This document shows, piece after piece, positions 1,359 to 24,319 of a stretch of DNA of 51,625 bases. Position 1 is the first letter of the stretch. Every line of letters starts with the position of its first letter. The position numbers and the translations under genes were made by a program. This DNA is from Trichosphaerium sp. ATCC 40318 (lineage: Eukaryota; Protista; Tubulinea). The stretch spans positions 1 through 51,625 of the forward strand of contig JALMLS010000029.1 of NCBI GenBank assembly GCA_038496445.1, written 5' to 3'. The notes beneath the pieces are model-generated. The model did not search any database. It was not told where the DNA came from and saw nothing but the letters and a program-made list of their open reading frames with translations.

Positions 1359-3741
1359 TCAAACAGAAGATATTTCTACTTCCTTGGTTGTTAAAGTATA
1401 AGGGAAAATGGCTTGTCTCAACTTAGGTACAAAGAAAGCAATAATCAGACCTACAGCAATCTACCATACAAATTTAGTTTGCAAAATAATAAATGACAAC
1501 AAGAAAAAGAATGATGTGCACATACGAACACAAAAATCGGCTATGACACCTAATACCAAACCAACATTTACTGATGCTCCGCTATCACAACTATCAGCTC
1601 TTGATGTGATAACAATTATGCTAACAAAAGTTAGAGATCAGTGCAAAACTAAAAGCATACGATGAAAGAGTCCGCTCAATTCTCGCCAATACACATTCTG
1701 GTGAAAGAACTGTAAAAGTACCATTGATACAGTTACTGTTACTTCGTATTACTTCTCTTCTTGTCTCGCCAACACTTGTTGTGTCATTATCACTTGTGAA
1801 GTCAATGATGAACGTTGTATTCGATGGTATCACAATACATCCTAAACATCAGATTAACCAATAAACGTGTGCTAAATAACTTGTGATACAAGACATACCT
1901 TCAACTTGAAGAAAGCCTCCTGGAGCGATTGTTGCTATCTCTGAGTTTACAAAGTCACCATTTATTATCAAAGGACTAGACAACACTATTTCAGGTGGTA
2001 GACTACCAACTGTTGGTGCAGCTGTAGGTGATACAGTTGTCGGTTCAACTGTTGGTGCTGTTGTAGGCGATATTGTAGTGGTAATGAAAGTTTTGCCTTC
2101 GCAAGTAACTATTCAACATTGTAAGCGAGCAAATATAAATAATTTATACCATTAGCTTGACAATCTACAAAATATGTGGTGATATCAGAGTAGCCACATG
2201 TAAGATTTGTTGGTGTTGAAGGACAATCAAAAACGCTTCCAGTATCTATTTGATAAATTAGTACAATACAATTGCTTGTGCATTACTATTGTTGAGGCTG
2301 TTTTCGAATGTTGTTGTATTTCTAAATACGAAATTAAGTATGCTTGACGTGTAACAATAGAGTACCTTATCATAAAGTTCATATCAGAGCCTATCAATGC
2401 TGGGGATCTTGTAGTTATTGGATTATTTTGTACTTGTTTTCTACGTTGGATCAGTCATCAGTTATTGGCTATTAAATTAAGGAGAACGTTACACGCATAT
2501 AATATTCTCAAATACACAAGAATCTATCACTGCTGATCCACCGTTTGATAGACCACTCAAACCAATGAGCCAACTAATAGGCAATTAACATGATACTTGG
2601 CTAGGCGTGCGTACCAGTACATCTGTCATTGATTGGTTTTTCTTCTTCCACAGTATTATCAATGAAAGTTGAGTTTATTATCTGTACATCAGTTGAATTT
2701 GCGTATAGTACTGAAACATAGTATTCAAATTGTGCTATATATAAATGAGAATATATGAGGACTAAGATTCACATACCACCTCTTGCAAGTACATAATTGT
2801 CCTTGAACAAACAAGAATTGACTGTAACCTAAGTAATAAATGCGTGTGAATAAGTTTAGCTGCTATGCAAAGTCACAAAGTACTCTATCAACAGTTCTGA
2901 ATGTAGCAACAATGCCTATGCTTAAATAGTTACGATCAAACAAAATAACGGGAATCAAATATTACCTCTTCCTGTCATTCTGTGCAGAAGACTTCCTCCT
3001 TTATAATTATGTTGAAAATGACAATTATTCACAGAAACTGTTTCGACTGTTTCTATCCATAGTCCCAAAGCTTCGGCAAATCTTCCTCTGTCATCGTACA
3101 GTTCTTGGAAAAGTGAATTGCGAACAGCAGCATTTCGACTATTTTTCTCATTAATTGTGACAAAATCGAAATAAATCACGTGTACCTGTCAAATATTTGA
3201 ATAGAACTCTCTGTGCCGGTAACTACCATATTCCTACGCAATAGTCAATTGATCGATAAAACTAGACTTGTAATGAATGTACTCTACAGTGACATTTGCG
3301 AACTCGCTCAATCTGATTTTACAACCATCAAACGTAAATCCTGATAATGAGATACTTATGTTTTGAAACCCTATCACCGTTTGCCTTTGAAGTGCGCATG
3401 AAACATTTATGCCTTTATTTAACGCTAAATAATATGTTACAGAAACGTCCAAAAGCGTCAACATACCATAAATGTCTATACTTTCGTTGAGTTGTGCTTG
3501 AAACAAGCCGGCAGAAAAATTTAACCCAGTAGAATTGAGAATAAGCGTGGTTGGTCCTTCGTTCAAGTAGCACCCCATGTCAGTGCCACAATCGTGGTCA
3601 CTTGAAGTTACGACTAAGACATTTGGTAAATATTAATAAAACGTCATATTGCGCTGAATAGGTATTCGTACTTGTGTTACCGTGGGCAGGTGCGGCAAGA
3701 GCAAAAAAGAAAAAGAAAGTACAGAAATAACGCAAAATCAT
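1359..3741 (-). CDS. Multi-exon type-I membrane protein, beta-helix-like ectodomain with PT stalk (family copy 1)
   Basis: Signal peptide MILRYFCTFFFFALAAPAHG; exons such as VTSSDHDCGTDMGCYLNEGPTTLILNSTG, CLFKDNY, STFIDNT and CVFEN; PT stalk; TM helix; tail PKLRQAIFPYTLTTKEVEISSV* with stop at 1359-1361; short GT-AG introns. Confidence 0.85.
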
Positions 3742-9395: not shown

Positions 9396-10640
9396 TTACT
9401 ATACAAGGAATAAGCAGTATTGGGCGTAATGAAGCGTTTTTTAGAAGGTAAATTTCTTTTTGAAACGCACGTGATGCTTTCCAAAACTATTATCAAAATA
9501 AAATTAAAATGTGCAATATGTTTTTGTCACCTCTCATTTGCTTTTAACTGCCCATAGAGGCTTTATCACGACATTTAGCGGATAAATTATAACACTCTTT
9601 TGTGTACCAAAAGTAAATTTGAACGTGAACAATCCGCACGCCAAAAGAACGTCACTGGTTGAAAATTACAGATCACTCACATTAAAATGTGGGCCTTACC
9701 GGAAAGTATTATGGAAACTTGCCATGTTGAACTACTTGAAGAAACCCATTTTGGGTTTTCTAGATTTTCTTTTATTGTTAATGTACTGTTAGTCGTCGAT
9801 ATTATGGCAAAAAAGCTTGAAGAGTACAGATGCTGATATCACGATTGGTCACTGCAACCATAGCAAACTTATTACGTAAATGTTAGTTATTTTAATCTCA
9901 AAATATTCTGTTTTTTGTAACATTTTTTTTTCTAGATTTGTTTATCTTGGCGTCAGAATCACACATACAAAAGCTTGTTGCTGAGTTTGAGAAATACGAT
10001 ATCCTGTATCATATTTGGTATCATAAATATGTACGCTAACTATGTGTATTGTCGGTTTTTATCAGCTTGTGCTCCTTGAGCACTTGCTCATGATGCCTCA
10101 GTCTCGCCAACCGTATAACAAGCTCCGTTTATATGGGAACAGAAGTTACATACACTGTACAACAGTTTTAGGCTGAAAATGTAAATTGCTATCTAAAATC
10201 AAGCAACAATACTCTAGACGCCGCTGCTTACGCGTAGAGAGTGTGTAGGTATCTACAAACCGCTGTTTAAAACAAAACGGCAATAAAAAGGTAAAACTCC
10301 CTAAACTCCCTCAATTATATTCTACCACGCATATTTAAACCCTATTCTTTATGTTACAGCTATTTGGACCGCCCTAGCCTTTAATGGTTACAAGATAAAA
10401 TTCCACATATAGAAAACTCATGAACTGTAACAAAAAGTAGTCATGCACATAAACAAGCATGCTTGTACTTAAATAAACAAAACGATCATTGGGTTTTTTA
10501 ATCACGTGGGTTACGCTTTCGTAATTATGTTGCTGAAATTTTGAGGCTTGACCTCAGCCTTCTCTTGACAAGGCTAAACAAATAAATTGCACTGTGAGTA
10601 ACAAACTTATTCTCAGATATGACAGTATGTTGTTACAGTA

Positions 10641-14177: not shown

Positions 14178-17100
14178 CTACAAGACACGTGACTCAACAG
14201 GAGTAACTTTTGTAGTGGTTCTTCGTAATGAGTATGGTACAATTACATGCCTCAGCTTTGGAACAAAGTAAATCACAATGAGACCAACAATCATCTATCA
14301 TTGAGTCAGTTTTGTGACAACTTAGAAAGAAACCTTACCAATACAAGAATACCAAAAACAATACCCAACACCATACCAATATTCACTGTTCCGCTTTCGT
14401 TATCACAACTTTCAGAGATTGATGTAATTACAAATATTCTAGGAACGTTAGATAATCTGTGGTATATTGGTGGACTGTACGATGAAAGAGTCTGCTCAAG
14501 TCTTGCCAATACACATTCTGGTGATACCAGTGTAACAGTACCGTTGATGCAGTTGCTGTTGCTTCGTATTATCTCTCTTCTCATCTCAACATGTGTAGTA
14601 GAGGTGATGACAAGTACTGTATTTGGTAATATCTCAATACATCCTAAATCAACGATTTGTACAAATGATTTCCGAGTAGAAAATACATGCAAGAAAACTG
14701 CCAAATGTACCTTGAACTACAATTGACCCACTTCCTGTTATTGTAAGTGTTTGTTGAATTACAAGAGCACCAGGAATAAAAATATCGGTGTCTACAACCT
14801 CAACTAGAGTTGTTGCAGAAGGAACAATTGTTGGAGGCTCAGATGTTGGAGTTGTAGGAGGGGGAGGAATTAAACATATGGCGTGCATGAATGGTAACAT
14901 AGTAACAGATGCTCCACAGCAATCTCCATTATCTTTGCAGTCATTACAAATTATAGGCACACCTACAAAGTTAGTAACAATAGTAAAACTATTTGTTTGA
15001 TTTACTTGTATTTGCTTGAAAACATCCATTCAATCCGGAATTTCTCCAACCGCAAATTATTGCATTGTTTGATATCACTGAAGTAGCTTGACACTCAATA
15101 TCTGCTTCAGGTTGCCCTTATGTATGTATATCAGAAAACTGTAAAAAAAATTGTAATAATACCTTCTGATTCAATAACAGTATCCCTTGTAGAGTGTTTA
15201 GTTACTGCGTAAAGTATAATGTTGTTTATAATATGAATTCAAAGTATCAAAATAATCACATGATATGGAAAGACAAAGAAACAACAAACATACATTAATG
15301 TTAAATCATCTGTTGTGTAAATTGCAACACCATTTTTCCTTTGCCCATTTGTTAGTGTTGCGATGTTAGAACCTATCCTTTACCTCATACTACTACTCAT
15401 TTTCACAATTCATCAAAACAGACAATATTGGGAGGAAGACATCAACGTTTAGTGGCTCTAGCGTAGCCCTTGATGTTGTCATTTACTAGCCAACAACATA
15501 CAAGTATACATGCATTACATAATAAAAGGAAAATTTGTCCAATCAAGTTTTGGTTTTCTTAATAAATTCAGTTTTTTGGACATTAAGGGTGGGAAAGGGG
15601 GATTTGATTTTGTTTACTACTTGCCATCTTGATTAATCGAGCTGTTACTCTCATTGTTGTATTTGGGTTAAGAATAGAATAGAGCCATTCCGGTCCACTC
15701 AGTTCAAACGCCTGAAATAATTCTATATTCATTCATTAGAACCTATCCTTTACCTCATACTACTACTCATTTTCACGATTCATCAAAACAGACAATATTG
15801 GGAGGAAGACATCAACGTCTAGTGGCTCTAGCGTAGCCCTTGATGTTGTCATTTACTAGCCATGTCAGTTGTCGTCCATCCACGGCAAGTGACCTCTCAT
15901 CCCAATATTATCTTCGTCTTCTGAGTTTCTGGTGAATAACTTCTGTAACATCACAGTACTAAAAAAAATTGAGAAAAATCAAGAGATTCACCCCCTAAAA
16001 TCTCTGAGATTTTGGACCACCAATCTCTGTGAATTTCTTCCTAAAATAACCTGAGAATTCTCTAGAAAATCACCAGAGAATTCTCTAGAGATTCTCTCCT
16101 TTTTTCTCAACTTTCAAAAAGGTAGGGTTAGGGGTTAGGAGTTTTAGTAAACGTATTGAGATTTTAAAGCGCAAGTGTAGTTATTTATTATTATTACAAT
16201 ACATGAAGTTACAATTACAAAAAAACCACCAATTAATCTCCTATCAAAGTTGTTGGTATCGTAAGGCCAAGCAAAATAAAAAAAAGGAACAGTCTACCAA
16301 AAAATCACTTTAAATGCTAGTACATGTTAATAAAATTAGATGTAAACGATAGTACTTTTTTTTGTAAGCGGAGCGCATGAGAGGTCATTTTTTGTTAAAT
16401 ACTACGGAATGACTTTTAAACGTTAAGTTACGTTAGATACGTTTGGGGACTCAAAACGTAAAGTAGAGATTTTCTCCAAAATTCTCAAAATCAAAAGAGA
16501 GTTTTCCACAAATTCTCACCAAATGAGATTTTTGAGAGAATCTCTCAAAAATCTCTGGAGGAAAATGAGATTTTTGGTGGAAATCACTACAAAATCACCA
16601 ATTTTAGAGATTTTGTGGTGATTCTCTACAAAAATCCCGTTTTCATTTTAGTACTGAGCTGAACAGCGTTAGTGGTTGCACCAGTTCTGGGTGATACACC
16701 GGCAACCAGGTGCCAAAACGTTGTACACCAGGTAAAAGAGGAGCTTCTTTAAAACGTTTCTTTTGCTCCTTTCTCTCCGCATGACTTACCGCAGCTAACT
16801 GAGTTGCGTTCGGAGTTGGTATCATCGAATACGTGTTGGCGCCACCTAACAACTTCAGGTTCGAGCGCGAAGCAGTACTCGACTGCGTGGTTGTACCTTG
16901 AACTGACCCAAGCGTGGGTGTGGTAACGACGGGTGTTGGACTAGGCCTGGCAGCACTAGTACTCGTTGGTGCGGCGACCATCGGAGTTGACGGGAGAGCA
17001 GGAGCAGTGCCCACAGCCGTGGTAGAATAGCCTCCTATGCGAGGAGCGAACGGGTTGATCCAATCGGTTGGAGGAGAAGCAACTTTCAGTTGCGTAGCTG

Positions 17101-20100
17101 GTTTGGGAAGTACTGGAGGCTTCTGTACGACACGTTGTTGCACCGTCACGGTGTTCGGTGGACCTCTAGCAGGAGTCGGCGCTGCTGGTTCCATTCCTTC
17201 AAAGTCGTTAGCGAGGTCAAGTAAACTACTTGTTTCGATATCGGCTAAATTTATAACTCGGCTATTCTTTTTCGCCAGTGGGTATAAAGACGTACTCTGC
17301 CGCGACGCAGCACTTTGAGATGTATTCTGTTGAGTCAGCATCGACTCGAACGTTTTCATGCGCGATTCCAACATAGCCATGTCGGTACGCGTCTTAAGCA
17401 GGTCCTTTTGGAGCTGGGCGTTCAGGTCTAAAATTCTCGAGCTGTTTTTATGGTAGATACCATGAATTTGTGGTATAATTATACCATTGATTACAATTTT
17501 ATACCACAAATTCCAGTATAATATACCATAAATCAAAGGATTTGTACCATAAAACAGCCAAATTATACCATAAATATGCAGTAGAAAGTGCGAATTTATA
17601 CCATATTTTTTCACCTGAAAAAATGCAATATATGGTATAATTCTACCATAAAACATGGTATAAAACACAGTATAATACCACAAAGTCTGGTATATTATAC
17701 CTTAAAACTTGGTAGATTATACCACAAAACCAAGTGTAAAAACTGTTCTAATAATAAAACCACATTTATTAATACATTTTTTTGTTTACATCTGTGACCT
17801 TTGGTTTTGTCCATATCCTCTTTTGTGGTAGTTGACACATCAAATAACCTTCAAAAAAAATATTGTACTTGCTGTAAGTGCATCGAATGGACATAGCATG
17901 AAAACTAAAAGAAGAATTAGTGAAGGCTTGATGCACAAAATAAATAGTCGTACAAAAATTGCTGTTTTGTTGTGGTGGCAGCACTGGGAGTAACAAATGA
18001 CCTGTGTGGTGGAGCCAAACCAAGACTAAAACAAAGAAATGAAAATAACTGCCAACTTCATCGGAAACAAGTTCTAGCGGAATCGTACCTGTTAGCTAAC
18101 ACATCTTGGTTTTTTTTTTATCATCTATTTAGCTTGGTTAAAACCTATGGCAAGCGGCTTCAAAACAACTACTTTTAGCGTACCTTGTGTTGTGCGGGCG
18201 ATAAACTGGACAAGACTTAGTTTTGTGCTCTGACTTAGCCAATTAGTTTACAATATCACTCGTAAGGTCAACGCATGGGTGTGAAGCCTAAATGCTATCT
18301 GTTCTGGCAAATGCGGGCGTTTAGTAGGGAAAAATTCAAAAAAATCCAAAAAAATCCAAAAAAAACCAAAAAACTCAAAAAATGGGTAGGCTCTGAAACA
18401 ACTTGGCCTTATAGCACTATTCACGCATTTTAACATGCATTGGAGCGTATATCAAAAATGTCAAAAAAAAATAAATAATTTTGCTCCTGATTTGGTAAAT
18501 GAGGCTGTATGGTGTTGATTGAGTGTAAAAATGCCTATGGAGGGGAGAAAAAAATGAGAGCCGGGGAAAAAAACCTCCAACTGGAGGTTTTTTGCGAATG
18601 GGCATTTTTCAAGCGCTAAACGCGTTTTTGGTGTGTCTACCACTGTAGCGTTCTAACATGGGGTACATGGAGTGGTTTCTTCCTCAAATACTGTCAATCG
18701 GAGAAAATTGGCCAATTTATCCCTAAAACGCCCGCAATTGGGGCGTGTTACCAGATTTCTCTCTTAAAACTGTTTTTCACACATTTATATGCCAATTATG
18801 TTCAATAACGGCTACTGTCAAAGCATTGTGTGGTATGGCGTTTGCGTAGGGCCAAAGGCTATTAAATCAAGTATAGACCAAGTGAGCTTTGACTAACTTA
18901 TACTTATACGGTATAATACCACGGTATAATACCACATTTTATGGTATAATTATATGGTATAATGCACAGTATACAATACTGTAAAATACAGTATAATACC
19001 ATGGTATAATACCGTGTTTTATGGTATAATTATATGGTATAATGCATGGTATAATATACTTTAAAATGCAGTATAATACCATGGTATAGTACCATGTTTT
19101 ATGGTATAATTATATGGTATAATGCATGGTATAATGTACTGTAAAATGTGGTATAATACCATGGTATAGTACCATGTTTTATGGTATAATTATATTCTAT
19201 AAATTGAAATATGGTATAAACATGGTATAATGGCTGTTATACCATTTGTCCAAAAAACATGGTATTATACCATATTTTATGGTATAATTATATGGTATAA
19301 TTATGGATTATACTGAGCTTGTACCATAAAAGGTGATTATACCATAAAATACGGTATAATACCATGATAATTTTCAGACCTGGTTGTGAGCCACAAGCTC
19401 ATCGTGTGTCGGTTCCGTTCTGCCGTTTGTTGCCGAAGTTCCATTCGGGTTGCCTACTCGCGGTGAGTTTGGAGGTTTAGAAGCTTCTGAAGGTAAAGTG
19501 GTAGTTTTACGTCTGTTTTTAGACGGAGAAAGGGTTTGTTTCACGTAGGTACCGATCTGCATAAGCAGAGATCTTTTCTGAGCCACCAGTTCCGGGTTCT
19601 CGTAGAGTACCGCCGAGATCGACTTCTGTTTGTTTTCTGCTAAATTGAAAAAGACCTTACCAAGCGGAGCCCATTCTGGGTACTTGCCACAAAAGACATA
19701 CTCGCGTACGCGTAGATGAATTTTGGCCAACTGCTTCAACGATCTGCTTTCCAACGCAGACCACAAGCCATGCCCTCGTAGTCGGTTGTCAGGGTCCAAG
19801 GCTGTTTTGTAGAGATCGAGATAACTTTGCTTCTTCACCAAGTTTGCCGGTACTCGGTCAAAGGTCTTGAAGCTTGCTAGTGCGTGATCACCCACCTTCT
19901 GCCAGTAGACGTGCATCTCGAGGAGTTCTGGACCCTCCTTTCCGTCAGCCACCGCCGTTCCTTGGTCGCCAAGGTCGATATCACCCAACATTTGATTTTG
20001 TTTACTACTTGCCATCTTGATTAATCGAGCTGTTACTCTCGTTGTTGTATTTGGGTTAAGAATAGAATAGAGCCGTTCCGGTCCACTCAGTTCAAACGCC

Positions 20101-21438
20101 TGAAATAATTCTATATTCATTCATAAAAGGATCAAGTACCCCTGTGTATCTTCGCATGTACTGCTGAAAATAAATGTATTTTCCATAGTGAGGGGTGATG
20201 CAGAATAAATACTGCAACCCTGAGCAGTAACATTGGGAGTTCCTGCGAAAATTTCATTCTTTTGAAAAACAGATCTTGCAATAGTAGCGTTTGATACATT
20301 TGATCCAATGTATAAAGCACCTCCACTTCCAGTGATTGAATCTTAATAAACATAAGAGCTAGAGCGCGATAATATGAAAAAACAAGATGAGTACTAGAAC
20401 CAGAGACATAGTTTAATCTATTGTTACCAAATTTTGTGTCATAGATTGCAAGCTGCTTAGTTGTTAATAATACTCAGTGTTGATAGGCAATGTACATGAA
20501 GTGTATTATCAACGTATAGCGCGCCACCTAAATACACTCTTTAGCTTTGAAATAAACTTCTTTTTTTAAGAGCATACCATTTATTGTACCATTGTAGTTG
20601 TACTCCCTGTTTACTACATTATTTTCTGAAAAGAAACAGTTGCGAATAATGAATGATAGCACACTGTCTACCGATAGTGCACCCCCGTATGTAGTATAAC
20701 CTTGTTCATTTTGTGGATTGTTATTATGGAATAAACAGTTTTCAATGTTCACATTGTCGCTACAAACAAATTCCAGCTTAATTTTTCATCAAACAAATAA
20801 CTAGCGCACCTGTTCTTGACATGGACAGCACCGAAACCACCAGGTTTTCTGGCATTTCCGCTGTAGTCCTCAACACCACAAGATCTTAACATTGTTAACT
20901 TACTTACTACTGAAGTACCGAACAAAGTTGTTTACCTGATAGAGATGTTGGCGATATCTTCCAGTTGAATTTGACAATTCCCAAAATGTAATCTTTCAAA
21001 AACCAGATTGTGGCCGTTTGTTGTTATTCTGTAGAGGTCTTTGCCATCACACTTAATCAAAGCTTTGTCATTAGTACCTAAAACAGAGAAAACTTAGTCA
21101 AGGTACTTAGAGCCAAGCGCTAATATCGCACGTGATCTGATAGTGATACCACCAGCAGTACTGAAACCAGTAGTCAAAGTATGATCGAAGCTATCTAATA
21201 CTATTTCTGACACTCCTGGTGTTGCTGCGTAGCAGTCTAATCTATTTTCACAAGGCGATGTGGCGGAAGTAGTTACTATATAAGCTATTAACGGTAGTCT
21301 TGCCGATATTTCTTTTAAAAAGATCAAATGTATTATTAGTCGAACTGTATGCGTCCAACAATTCGTACTTGTGATGCTGTTAGCCAATGTAGCAAACGCG
21401 AGAATCAACAACAAAGAGTAACAGAAATAATATTCCAT
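14178..21438 (-). CDS. Divergent family copy 4 with a GGAL/FxxN beta-helix ectodomain, carrying a 4.76-kb insertion in an intron
   Basis: 5' exons at 20140-21438 (MEYYFCYSLLLILAFATLANSIT; NIENCLFHNN...YGGALSVDSVLSFIIRNCFFSEN) join in frame to 3' exons at 14178-15338 (STCEDTQG/KNGVAIYTTDDLTL); the C-terminal part closely matches copy 5; stop at 14178-14180. Confidence 0.75.
15366..15862. repeat. B2-spacer-A2-B1 repeat block of the split-direct-repeat element
   Basis: 15366-15492 vs 15736-15862 differ at 2 positions; 15602-15736 vs 19990-20124 differ at 2 positions. Confidence 0.95.
15954..16656. mobile_element. Non-autonomous TIR element (MITE) of about 700 bp nested in the split-repeat element
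   Basis: TIR CAGTACTAAAA...TTTTAGTACTG; arrays of GAGATT/AATCTC-type subterminal repeats at both ends; no matching TSD seen. Confidence 0.75.
16657..20120 (-). pseudogene. Interrupted, roughly 500-codon intronless ORF of the split-repeat element (putative gag-like ORF1)
   Basis: 20120-19383 (...ELVAHN) continues in frame at 17419 (AQLQKDLLKTRTDMAMLESRMK...) once the 1960-bp insert and one GTT are removed. It contains a coiled-coil-like segment and a Pro/Ser/Thr-rich region, is visibly more GC-rich than the host DNA, and is truncated by the MITE at 16656. Confidence 0.75.
17423..19382. mobile_element. Non-autonomous DNA transposon, 1960 bp, with a 3-bp TSD and subterminal repeat arrays
   Basis: TIR CAGGTCTAAAATT...AATTTTCAGACCTG; TSD GTT at 17420-17422 and 19383-19385; dozens of TGGTATAAT/ATTATACCA motifs at about 17450-17725 and 18905-19370. 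Confidence 0.88.
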
Positions 21439-21860: not shown

Positions 21861-24319
21861 TCTAGCAAAGTCAGAATTACACGGTAAGCGCAAATGACAT
21901 ACCAATCTTCGACTGGAAGAATTTTTGGAGTAGTTCTTCGTAATGAGTATGGTATAATTGCATGTCTCAACTTTGGAACAAAGTAAATCACAAAGAGACC
22001 AACAATCATCTATCATTGAGTCAGTTTTGTGACAACCTAGAAAGAAGCCTTACCAATAGGAGAAAACCAAAAACAATACCCAACACCACACCAATACTCA
22101 CTGTTCCGCTTTCGTTATCACAACTTTCAGATCTTGATGTAATTACAAATATTCTAGGAACGTCAGATAATCTGTAGTATATTGGTGGACTGTACGATGA
22201 AAAAGTCTGCTCAAGTCTTGCCAATACACATTCTGGTGATACAAGCGTAACAGCACCGTTGATGCAGTTACTGTTGCTTCGTATTATCTCTCTTCTCATC
22301 TCAACATGTGTAGTAGAGGTGATGACAAGTACTGTATTTGGTAATATCTCAATACATCCTAAATCAACGATATTATTTTCGAGTTGCGCAAGCCCTAAAT
22401 TTTTGTACCTTGAACTACAACTGACCCGCTTTCTGTTATTGTAACTGTCCCTTCGATTATAAGATCACCAGGAATAAAGATATCAGTGTCCACAAACTCA
22501 ATTAGAACTGTTGACGAAGTTGTTGGTGCTTCAGTTGTTGGTGCTAAAACGTAAGAAGAAAGTAAGAAACTTGGTGTTTGAACAAAGTCTTACAAACAGA
22601 AGTTCCGACCTTGCATGTAACTATAAACAAAAAGGTGAGTTGTAAGGTTTGGTTTGAACTAAATGACTTAATGTACCATTCGTTTGACAATCTCCAAAGA
22701 AACTACTGGCAGTATAGTCGGTTCCGCATGTGAAGTTTGTTGGTATCTCAGGACAGTGAAATACGTTTCTGGTGGTTTCTTAAAAGCTATTAATCATTCT
22801 TCAACATAATTTGTGATTGCTTACCATTGGATTGATTGGTTGCAAATGTCGTATTTCTGCGCAAAGTAAATTTATTCTCATGTTTTATAGATGTACTATA
22901 GTACCTTATTGTGATATCCATAGAGTCACCGATCAATGCTGGAGAACTTAGAACAGTTGAGGTATTTTTACTAAAGGTGTCAGAATATCTAGGTGTAGTC
23001 GTGTTTTCTGTTCACAAAACGGCTAGGTACGCACATGCATATATTGTCCTTAAACACACAAGAGTCTATCAGAGAGTAACCGCTTTGTCCGCTTGCACTT
23101 GAAACGATCACTACCAAAGCTCCAACTATTGACATTAGTTCAACTATCCAACCGAGCATATATGCGTACCAGTACATCTATTTTCTAACGGCACCAGCTC
23201 TTGAACAGTGTTCTCAATAAATGTTGAGTTTAAAACTTGAATATCCTTTGACTCTATGTGTAGCGCTGAAGCAGATGAAAAAGCAGCAGAGGATACGTTG
23301 GTCGCTGAACAAATTTAAGAAGTTAAAAAAAATCTGGAAAACAATCTTACAAATTATTGTGGCAATAGCACGATTGTGCTCAAACGAACAAGACTTGACA
23401 ACAACCTATGAATAATAATGAGACCTAATAGATACAATAAAGTGAATTTAGTTGGTGTACTTTATCTGTAGATTGAAAACGAGCAATAATACCTACATGA
23501 AGTAAATCCTTCAAACACTTGGAAAATACTAACGCGTTAAGTAGTGGCAACTGGGTACCTTGTAAATTAGTTAGACTATTCCCAGTTCTGTTATTATCTA
23601 GGAAATGACAGTTTTCCATATGCACTGTTTTGGTATTTCGAACTGCTATTCCCAAAGAACGGAAAAAGGTTCTCAAGGCATATAAATTTGTAAACAATGA
23701 ATCCTTAATTGTAGCGCTTAGACTAAACTCTTGCAATTAGGAAAAAGAAGGAGTGGTAAGAAGATGTCTACCTACTAACTACTCTAATGTATGCCTCGTT
23801 TCCAGTTACTACAACGTTTCTAAAACAACTAAGATAAGTCTAATACATACTTCTTGAGCCTTACTCAACAGAAATGTTTGCAAACACGTTCAATCGCAAG
23901 CCACAATCTCTCAAAGTAAATCCTGATAATGACATGCTCACATTGCTATTCGCTTGCAAAGTAGTAGTAGTACCAATGATACTACATGTCACAGATACAT
24001 TCCTCACGCCTAAGGTTCATTAAAACTAACTATTATCACGTGATTGCATGGCTCACCGTAAATATCAACACTTTTTGTAACTTCAACTGTTGTTCCGTTA
24101 AAAAATAATCCAGTAGAATTGAGCACTAGCGTTGTTGGCGCTTCGCTCAAATAACAACCAAGGTAAGCGCCACAAGCATGTCCGCTCGAAGTTATGACTA
24201 GATAGGAATAAATTACCTCTTTCATCGGTAGAATGAGTCTAACGGTTCGTACTTGTATTGCCGTGAGTGATACTAGCGAATGATAAAATCAACAATGAGC
24301 TGTAGAAATACAAATACAT
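21861..24319 (-). CDS. Surface-protein family copy 5
   Basis: Starts MYLYFYSSLLILSFASITHGNT; includes HACGAYLGCYLSEAPTTLVLNSTG; tail PKLRHAIIPYSLRRTTPKILPVED. The stop is probably TG/A split by a final intron; otherwise the frame reads through to 21773. Confidence 0.8.

Follow-up and report, generated by a model that had tools for sequence, protein, structure and literature searches.

Structural definitions have been published for Ngaro and other tyrosine recombinase (YR) retrotransposons (PMC4157794, PMC9210276, PMC8547959). Ngaro elements have split direct repeats (A1 = A2, B1 = B2) with the internal copies downstream of YR, encode RT and RNase H together with a tyrosine recombinase instead of a DDE integrase, and integrate without a target-site duplication (TSD). 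PAT-like elements belong to the DIRS group, whose defining feature is a putative methyltransferase domain (PMC4157794). LTR retrotransposons have two LTRs, a DDE integrase, and a duplication of 4–6 bp.

Within the window, i.e., the whole stretch of 51,625 nucleotides that was analysed, we read positions 15366–20124 as a dead copy of a Ngaro-like retrotransposon (DIRS order, tyrosine recombinase) that was later gutted and nested into. We estimate the probability of this reading at about 0.9. The assignment of the window copy, which lacks RT, RNase H, and catalytic YR, leans on a 98%-identical sister copy on contig C368 and on further relatives, and is to that extent a probable one. The features, with their basis in parentheses, are as follows.

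15366–20124, minus strand: whole element, a probable defective copy of a Ngaro-like YR retrotransposon, 4,759 bp (repeats, junction, sister copy, paralogous empty site).
19990–20124, minus strand: A1, 5' terminal split repeat, 135 nt, starting with ATGAATGAAT and holding the gag start (repeat comparison; same A at 98% on C368).
19383–20120, minus strand: gag, 5' part, 246 codons (98% to the uninterrupted C368 gag, L055 1061–1802; frame checked).
17423–19382, no strand given: nested insertion 1, a non-coding TIR DNA transposon, 1,960 bp (exact boundaries against the C368 copy).
16656–17422, minus strand: gag, middle part, about 255 codons (element 2703–3469 equals L055 1800–2566, 98%).
15955–16655, no strand given: nested insertion 2, a TIR element of about 700 bp with AGTACTAAAA... 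at both ends (copies elsewhere in the genome).
15865–15954, minus strand: remnant of the YR ORF, last 29 or so codons plus TGA stop (tblastn with C26 YR aa 331–357, E = 1.7e-4).
15736–15862, minus strand: B1, internal copy of the 3' terminal repeat, 127 nt, ending in GGTTCTAA (repeat comparison).
15602–15736, minus strand: A2, internal copy of the 5' terminal repeat, its first base being the last base of B1 (repeat comparison).
15493–15601, minus strand: spacer between A2 and B2, 109 bp (spacer plus B at 86–92% on C20, C361, and C33).
15366–15492, minus strand: B2, 3' terminal split repeat, 127 nt (repeat comparison).

The split repeats A1, A2, B1, and B2 had been described in the sequence-only reading, and their positions, the two mismatches per pair (135 nt for A1 and A2, 127 nt for B1 and B2), and the 109-nt spacer were all reproduced. 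All four differences are transitions, three of them CpG to TpG. As the spacer is conserved beside B in related copies, it belongs to the element. The internal junction had been claimed to equal both ends joined, and this holds: on the minus strand, ...GGTTCTA-A-TGAATG... is the end of B2 followed by the start of A1, with a single A common to both. The ATG of gag lies within A1 at 20120, and an in-frame ATG in good context follows at 20015.

The element is flanked by CCTTTT (5') and CATCGC (3'), and there is no duplication. A paralogous locus (L071, contig C54) matches the flanks at 72% (upstream) and 84% (downstream) and is collinear across the insertion point; therefore, all 4,759 bp are an insertion relative to that duplicate, without a TSD. 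Copies with the same ends on C259 and C36, both internally deleted with their ends intact, lie in unrelated flanks. The proposed insertion without TSD is confirmed by these three observations. A search for an empty-site allele found no allelic one and only the 72–84% paralogue, at which a one-base crossover is below resolution. The ORFs of the host flanks gave no match in a Pfam search; hence, the host locus is left unnamed.

A search of the genome for further copies with the same ends, as had been suggested, was successful on C368, C259, C36, and C151, and 36-nt fragments of A were found on C522 and C150. The solo B on C151 was considered as the 3' end of a full copy and rejected, as it adjoins RCC1-like ORFs. 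The C368 copy is 98% identical and runs from A1 through gag, which is uninterrupted here and has a weak CCHC knuckle, into RT, RNase H, and the N-terminus of YR. In Pfam searches it matched RVT_1 (E = 3.5e-16) and RT_RNaseH (E = 1.5e-4; RNase H-like domain), and tblastn with the C26 proteins described below gave 62% for RT, 71% for RH, and 55–70% for YR aa 3–142. This copy ends inside YR at the contig end, and no complete copy of the window's exact subfamily is among the copies found.

The nearest intact relative is on C26. It spans 5,339 bp in the order A1-gag-RT/RH-YR-B1A2-spacer-B2, and all its repeats are 100% identical. The layout was taken from match coordinates (A1, 118377–118266; B1, 113508–113401; A2, 113402–113291; B2, 113146–113039). 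Its ORFs encode an RT/RH protein of 539 aa and a YR of 359 aa, with an RVT_1 match at E = 1.6e-20. In five relatives that encode a YR, the B1/B2 repeats are perfect, start within about 25 nt of the point where the YR ORF ends, and are spaced by 283–362 bp; the internal repeats are thus downstream of YR in these relatives, and likewise downstream of the YR remnant in the window.

In the third ORF (ORF3) of nine relatives, the motifs LRIGN, TKT, GHSxRRGGAT, GDW, and AYxIY are invariant (R...K...HxxR...W...Y). PF00589 (Phage_integrase) matches ORF3 in six of the nine, with a best E value of 1.3e-5 and all scores below the gathering score. Sequence searches of the PDB with one YR and with a nine-member profile were blank or insignificant, and therefore a fold search was needed. 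It returned Cre, Tn1549 Int, XerA/H, IntI, and lambda Int, the top matches all being of Cre type (Cre and its engineered variant Tre; E about 1e-6), with a structure model of mediocre quality (mean pLDDT 61, TM about 0.4). The motifs, the sub-threshold PF00589 matches, and the predicted Cre-like fold identify ORF3 of the relatives as a predicted tyrosine recombinase. A genome-wide search with PF00589 gave one weak match only, outside this family; for recombinases of this type, the Pfam model is not sensitive enough.

In the fuller copy and the relatives, the enzymes encoded are RT, RNase H, and a tyrosine recombinase, and neither a DDE integrase nor a GIY-YIG enzyme. The element had been proposed to be a tyrosine-recombinase retrotransposon with the A1...B1A2...B2 layout of PAT, Ngaro, and VIPER, and this is upheld. 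An LTR retrotransposon or other DDE-integrase element with rearranged LTRs, or repeats made by chance or by the assembly, might be suspected in a genome rich in other RT-bearing elements. We consider this close to impossible: the flanks lack a 4–6-bp duplication, the repeats are split and are not LTRs, the C26 relative shows this layout again with perfect repeats, and the motifs and fold matches of ORF3 point to a tyrosine recombinase.

The Ngaro-like label is assigned from element structure only (split direct repeats, no methyltransferase domain). The family could instead be a PAT-like lineage minus the methyltransferase, or a VIPER-like or unnamed clade. Among YR elements, both the split direct repeats and the loss of the methyltransferase domain are homoplasious (PMC4157794), and the nearest atlas clusters are unnamed RT/RH proteins of about 540 aa from molluscs, euglenozoans, and cnidarians. 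Against this stands the complete Ngaro structure, with split direct repeats, internal repeats downstream of YR, the order gag-RT/RH-YR, and no methyltransferase. In the relatives, neither a match to a methyltransferase domain after RT/RH nor an extra ORF was found, as judged from size and absence of a match, and the RT/RH ORF of 526–539 aa abuts or overlaps the YR ORF. We therefore think a placement outside Ngaro proper unlikely and retain the Ngaro-like reading.

The single long ORF reported between A1 and B1 did not hold up. There are two ORFs instead (19374–20120, 248 aa; 16643–17683, 346 aa), which are the two parts of a single gag into which a transposon has inserted; a Pfam search of both gave nothing significant. 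Once the nested element and one AAC are taken out, the gag parts are in frame, and the frame is open for about 500 codons. The match to the C368 gag stops at 16656, and the window gag is without about 195 codons at its C-terminus, among them the CCHC knuckle.

Nested element 1: The inserted transposon has the TIR CAGGTCTGAAAATT, subterminal GGTATAATACC palindromes, and 80-bp tandem repeats, and it is bordered by a 3-bp duplication, AAC, at 19385–19383 and 17422–17420. At least 40 copies at 89–98% are present in the genome, and the TIRs were also found in 11 other copies. A Pfam search of the nested-element ORFs gave nothing. Both long copies of the Ngaro subfamily contain this element at different sites, namely in gag in the window and in RT on C368. 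Among the 11 other sampled copies, two are inside retroelement pol genes and one adjoins an RT ORF. It is conceivable, if rather doubtful, that the element homes into retrotransposon coding sequence rather than merely accumulating there. If true, a marine amoeba would harbour a DNA transposon that targets other TEs, which would be unusual.

Nested element 2: This element, with copies at 94–98% on C30, C228, C129, and C158, occupies the point of deletion, with gag on one side and the C-terminal end of YR on the other. About 3.2 kb are lost from the window copy, comprising the end of gag, RT, RNase H, and most of YR. The absence of the enzymes is due to this deletion, at which the unrelated nested TIR element now lies. 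The TGA stop of the YR remnant is 2 nt before B1, and the remnant segment is also found upstream of B on C259 at 89%. It had been stated that no RT, RNase H, or recombinase is visible; this is correct for RT, RNase H, and the catalytic part of YR and incorrect for the C-terminal codons of YR, of which about 29 survive.

Native element sequence makes up about 2.1 kb of the 4,759 bp, with some 500 codons of gag and the recombinase remnant directly upstream of B1 retained. Because no enzyme is encoded and gag is broken, the copy is immobile by itself. If it were a non-autonomous derivative with gag only, or a new lineage lacking enzymes, its cis-acting ends (A1, B1A2, B2) would be preserved and autonomous relatives would copy it in trans. 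All four terminal and internal repeats are indeed intact in the window copy, the restored gag frame is long, the internally deleted C259 and C36 copies also have intact ends, and Cafeteria is known to have deletion variants of Ngaro (PMC8547959). Among the genome matches, however, no second copy shares the gag/nested-element/YR-remnant junctions or the nested insertions of the window. Moreover, an unrelated DNA transposon sits in the deletion junction, the 1,960-bp insertion breaks gag, and the repeats are 1.5% diverged, whereas those of the active relatives are 100% identical. We rejected the deleted form as a mobile non-autonomous lineage for want of a second copy with the same junctions, and the broader enzyme-less explanation appears very improbable.

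The earlier suggestion of a new lineage is hence replaced by an ordinary Ngaro-type element, in which the enzymes were deleted, the ORF is the family gag, and a C-terminal YR remnant is present. To call it a young insertion was an overstatement given the repeat divergence, the two nested insertions, and the large deletion; the young ones are the relatives with 100% identical repeats. The Ngaro-like family is still young elsewhere in the genome.

In the history of the locus, the element inserted without a TSD and the 1,960-bp TIR transposon afterwards entered gag; about 3.2 kb were lost at the point now held by the second TIR element of about 700 bp. The replication and integration steps would be those of the circle/junction model for DIRS-order elements (PMC7192593), from which they are adopted by analogy. 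An intact member would be transcribed into an RNA without the extreme ends. Reverse transcription guided by the internal B1A2 junction would rebuild the ends and join them into a circle, and the B/A junction of the circle would be recombined with the target by the element's tyrosine recombinase. In this model at most one base, the A in GGTTCTA-A-TGAATG, would be shared, and therefore no duplication would arise.

The importance of the locus beyond annotation is small: what looked like a split-repeat element without enzymes is a decayed copy from a Ngaro-like family. Its exact termini (5' ATGAATGAAT ... GGTTCTAA 3', with the one-base junction overlap) are now available, and the paralogous empty site documents duplication-free integration. 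With the termini and the intact C26 relative, the family can be masked and annotated, and the circle-junction model can be put to the test in this organism.

Compared with known systems, DIRS-1 of Dictyostelium and the DIRS1-like elements are likewise YR retrotransposons in which the internal junction templates the joined ends and for which circle integration is proposed. They differ in having inverted terminal repeats, an internal complementary region, and a methyltransferase domain, whereas the repeats here are direct and split. The PAT-like elements (Pat1, Toc, Kangaroo) share the split direct repeats A1-B1-A2-B2; the relatives here have neither room nor an ORF for a methyltransferase, as the YR ORF directly overlaps the 539-aa RT/RH ORF. 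VIPER and TATE of kinetoplastids have the same repeat pattern (A1 ... B1 A2 B2) and the same gene set, but they are highly divergent and not known outside kinetoplastids. The Ngaro-like elements (DrNgaro of zebrafish; Ngaro types 1–4 of Cafeteria burkhardae) differ from the window copy, from which RT, RH, and almost the whole of YR are gone and in which two DNA transposons are nested, and from the family in its long gag of about 695 codons and the one in-frame TGA that parts gag from pol in the relatives. They agree with it in the order gag, RT/RNase H, YR, in the absence of a methyltransferase domain, in the size of about 5.3 kb, in integration without a TSD, and in the occurrence of internally deleted variants.

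The assembly comprises 642 contigs with a total of 70.3 Mb, and G+C in the window is ~36%. The element at window 15366-20124 (minus strand, 4,759 bp) is a decayed retrotransposon, ordinary and of a known kind. Its parts, from A1 to B2 in window coordinates, are as follows.

A1: 20124-19990, minus strand, 135 nt, 2 mismatches against A2
Nested element 1: 17423-19382, non-coding terminal-inverted-repeat DNA transposon of 1,960 bp, boundaries by base-level comparison with contig C368
Nested element 2: 15955-16655, unrelated repeat of ~700 bp with AGTACTAAAA-type inverted ends
Tyrosine recombinase (YR) remnant: 15954-15865, minus strand, C-terminal ~29 residues directly after nested element 2, by translation and tblastn
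B1: 15862-15736, minus strand, 127 nt, 2 mismatches against B2
A2: 15736-15602, minus strand, 135 nt, 2 mismatches against A1
Spacer: between A2 and B2, minus strand, 109 nt
B2: 15492-15366, minus strand, 127 nt, 2 mismatches against B1

The repeats were defined by repeat search and direct comparison, and both agree with every repeat coordinate and mismatch count of the sequence-only reading. All four differences within the pairs are transitions, and three of them turn CpG into TpG, a hint that methylation has driven decay of the element (window 15366-15862 and 19990-20124). The internal B1/A2 junction, proposed to equal the two ends joined, does so: on the minus strand it reads GGTTCTA-A-TGAATG, the end of B2 followed by the start of A1, with a single A common to both. 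Insertion without a target-site duplication was likewise upheld. The flanks, CCTTTT and CATCGC, have no bases in common, and contig C54 carries a paralogue of the 5' flank. This locus, L071 (C54:127309-130896), is paralogous to window 14366-15365 and 20125-21124 at 72-84% nucleotide identity and lacks the element. In local alignments, L071 1118-2088 matches the upstream kilobase (72%) and L071 2110-2422 the downstream flank (84%); in a global alignment, the joined flanks run unbroken across the insertion junction. Hence, compared with the duplicated locus, the window carries an additional 4,759 bp. Neither the flanks nor the paralogue reveal a target-site duplication at the junction (at 72-84% identity, a one-base overlap is indistinguishable from none). 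The resemblance stems from a duplication, segmental or of a gene, or else from an older repeat. ORFs in the host flanks gave no Pfam match.

The "long ORF" that had seemed unplaceable is rejected as a single ORF, as it is a gag gene divided by nested element 1. In a genome search with the internal 4.1 kb, query positions 605-2568 proved to be a repeat in their own right, present at least 40 times at 89-98% identity. One other contig, C368, matches both sides of it, and there the two gag parts are contiguous, uninterrupted by that insert. The transposon has 13-14-nt terminal inverted repeats, CAGGTCTGAAAATT, which are present in 11 other copies, and AAC is duplicated. After its excision, the ORFs at 19374-20120 and 16643-17683 form one open frame of ~500 codons. 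The interior carries 80-bp tandem repeats and GGTATAATACC palindromes (window 17423-19382; also loci L032-L042 and L055 3947-6848), and the duplications flanking the copies appear to be 2-3 bp and variable. Copies frequently lie within retroelements: in gag (window), in RT (C368), between protease and RT/RNase H (L033), between RT and RNase H (L041), or adjoining RT (L042). Those at L032 and L037 adjoin F-box/LRR and MORN genes.

The sister copy on C368 (L055), 98% identical to the window copy, carries in order A1, gag, RVT_1 (E 3.5e-16), another copy of the 1,960-bp transposon (L055 3947-6848), and an RNase H-like domain. Its gag frame, interrupted by one premature stop, reaches L055 3152 and includes a CCHC knuckle that is weak (E 0.012). 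The nearest intact relative lies on contig C26, and tblastn with its proteins located the YR N-terminus (aa 3-142) at 55-70% identity, up to the end of C368. The proposed examination of fuller copies for RT, RNase H, and YR thus found all three, and a tyrosine recombinase is encoded. Some 1.07 kb (L055 7650-8720) separate the RNase H ORF from the YR N-terminus, although these ORFs overlap in intact relatives, and are probably a third nested insertion.

The match of the window copy to C368 stops at window 16656, and the YR C-terminus resumes after nested element 2; hence, ~3.2 kb are gone, comprising ~195 gag codons, RT/RNase H, and ~330 YR codons. The YR remnant matches aa 331-357 of the C26 recombinase (tblastn, E 1.7e-4), its TGA stop lies 2 nt before B1, and the same segment adjoins B on contig C259 (89%). 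Nested element 2 now fills the deletion junction, and the loss may have occurred by recombination between two insertions of this element or by deletion beside one. Its other copies are on C30, C228, C129, and C158 (94-98%), and its interior contains GAGAATTCTCT-type repeats. On C129, the ends are 12.4 kb apart (9422-9623, 21861-21988), which may mark a long, possibly autonomous version. Because it has no enzymes and a broken gag, the window copy is inert by itself.

Relatives were collected by a search with the RNase H region. They consist of a gag ORF, an RT/RNase H ORF of 526-539 aa, and a third ORF of 354-359 aa that abuts or overlaps the second. This third ORF bears out the earlier assignment to the tyrosine-recombinase retrotransposons. 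Its invariant motifs LRIGN, TKT, GHSxRRGGAT, GDW, and AYxIY are the counterparts of R, K, HxxR, W, and Y in tyrosine recombinases, and six of nine members match PF00589 (best E 1.3e-5, all under the gathering score). The AlphaFold model of the C26 recombinase is mediocre (mean pLDDT 61); its structure search gave 31 matches at E up to 0.001, the top ones all Cre and its engineered variant Tre (E ~1e-6), followed at lower rank by Tn1549 integrase, XerA, XerH, IntI, and lambda integrase. In five relatives, a perfect direct repeat pair, 283-362 bp apart, starts within ~25 nt of the third-ORF end, which is the B1...B2 pattern. A single in-frame TGA, in several cases within TGA-CAA-T, separates gag from RT/RNase H in seven relatives (L060, L063, L065-L069). 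The C26 element has 100% identical repeats, matched at these coordinates:

A1: 118377-118266
B1: 113508-113401
A2: 113402-113291
B2: 113146-113039

Its 5,339 bp equal the size of the window copy with the nested elements taken out and the deletion restored.

The suggested genome search for the same ends found them on C368, C259, C36, C151, C522, and C150. In the C259 copy (L009, C259:33568-36683, ~1500-2075, minus strand), A is followed by ~330 bp of 5' gag, by the YR C-terminus, and by B; A2, the spacer, and B2 are lacking, and host DNA comes next. This form is either the expected product of B1 x B2 recombination or an independent deletion form. On C36 (L007, C36:383470-386583, ~1501-1642, minus strand), a 140-bp stub joins A positions 2-24 to B positions 14-127 and keeps both termini. 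C151 carries a truncated solo B, and C522 and C150 a 36-nt A fragment each. No copy with both ends has a flanking duplication.

The anatomy is seen directly, and so is the fact that the internal junction is identical to the joined ends. In the DIRS-order model, as outlined in PMC7192593 and with a split-repeat version cited in PMC6681497, the internal junction templates end restoration and joining in cDNA from a shorter transcript. By analogy, the ends would be rebuilt and joined on the B1/A2 junction, and the recombinase would integrate the resulting circle at the B/A junction.

Ngaro-like elements have the order A1-[ORFs]-B1A2B2, with internal repeats downstream of YR and without a methyltransferase domain; PAT-like elements are placed in the DIRS group, defined by a putative methyltransferase domain, and in DIRS1-like elements the repeats are inverted and an internal complementary region is present (PMC4157794, PMC9210276, PMC6681497). 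At family level, our elements have every structural Ngaro-like trait, and we classify them as Ngaro-like in the sense of a structural label. The possible new lineage is abandoned, as the enzymes were lost with the ~3.2 kb and are present in the sister copy and relatives, and the ORF that had no known family is this family's gag. Placement in another YR clade is improbable, and we keep it in consideration because the structural traits used are homoplasious (PMC4157794). Ngaro elements with gag, RT/RNase H, and YR ORFs range from protists to vertebrates (PMC8547959).
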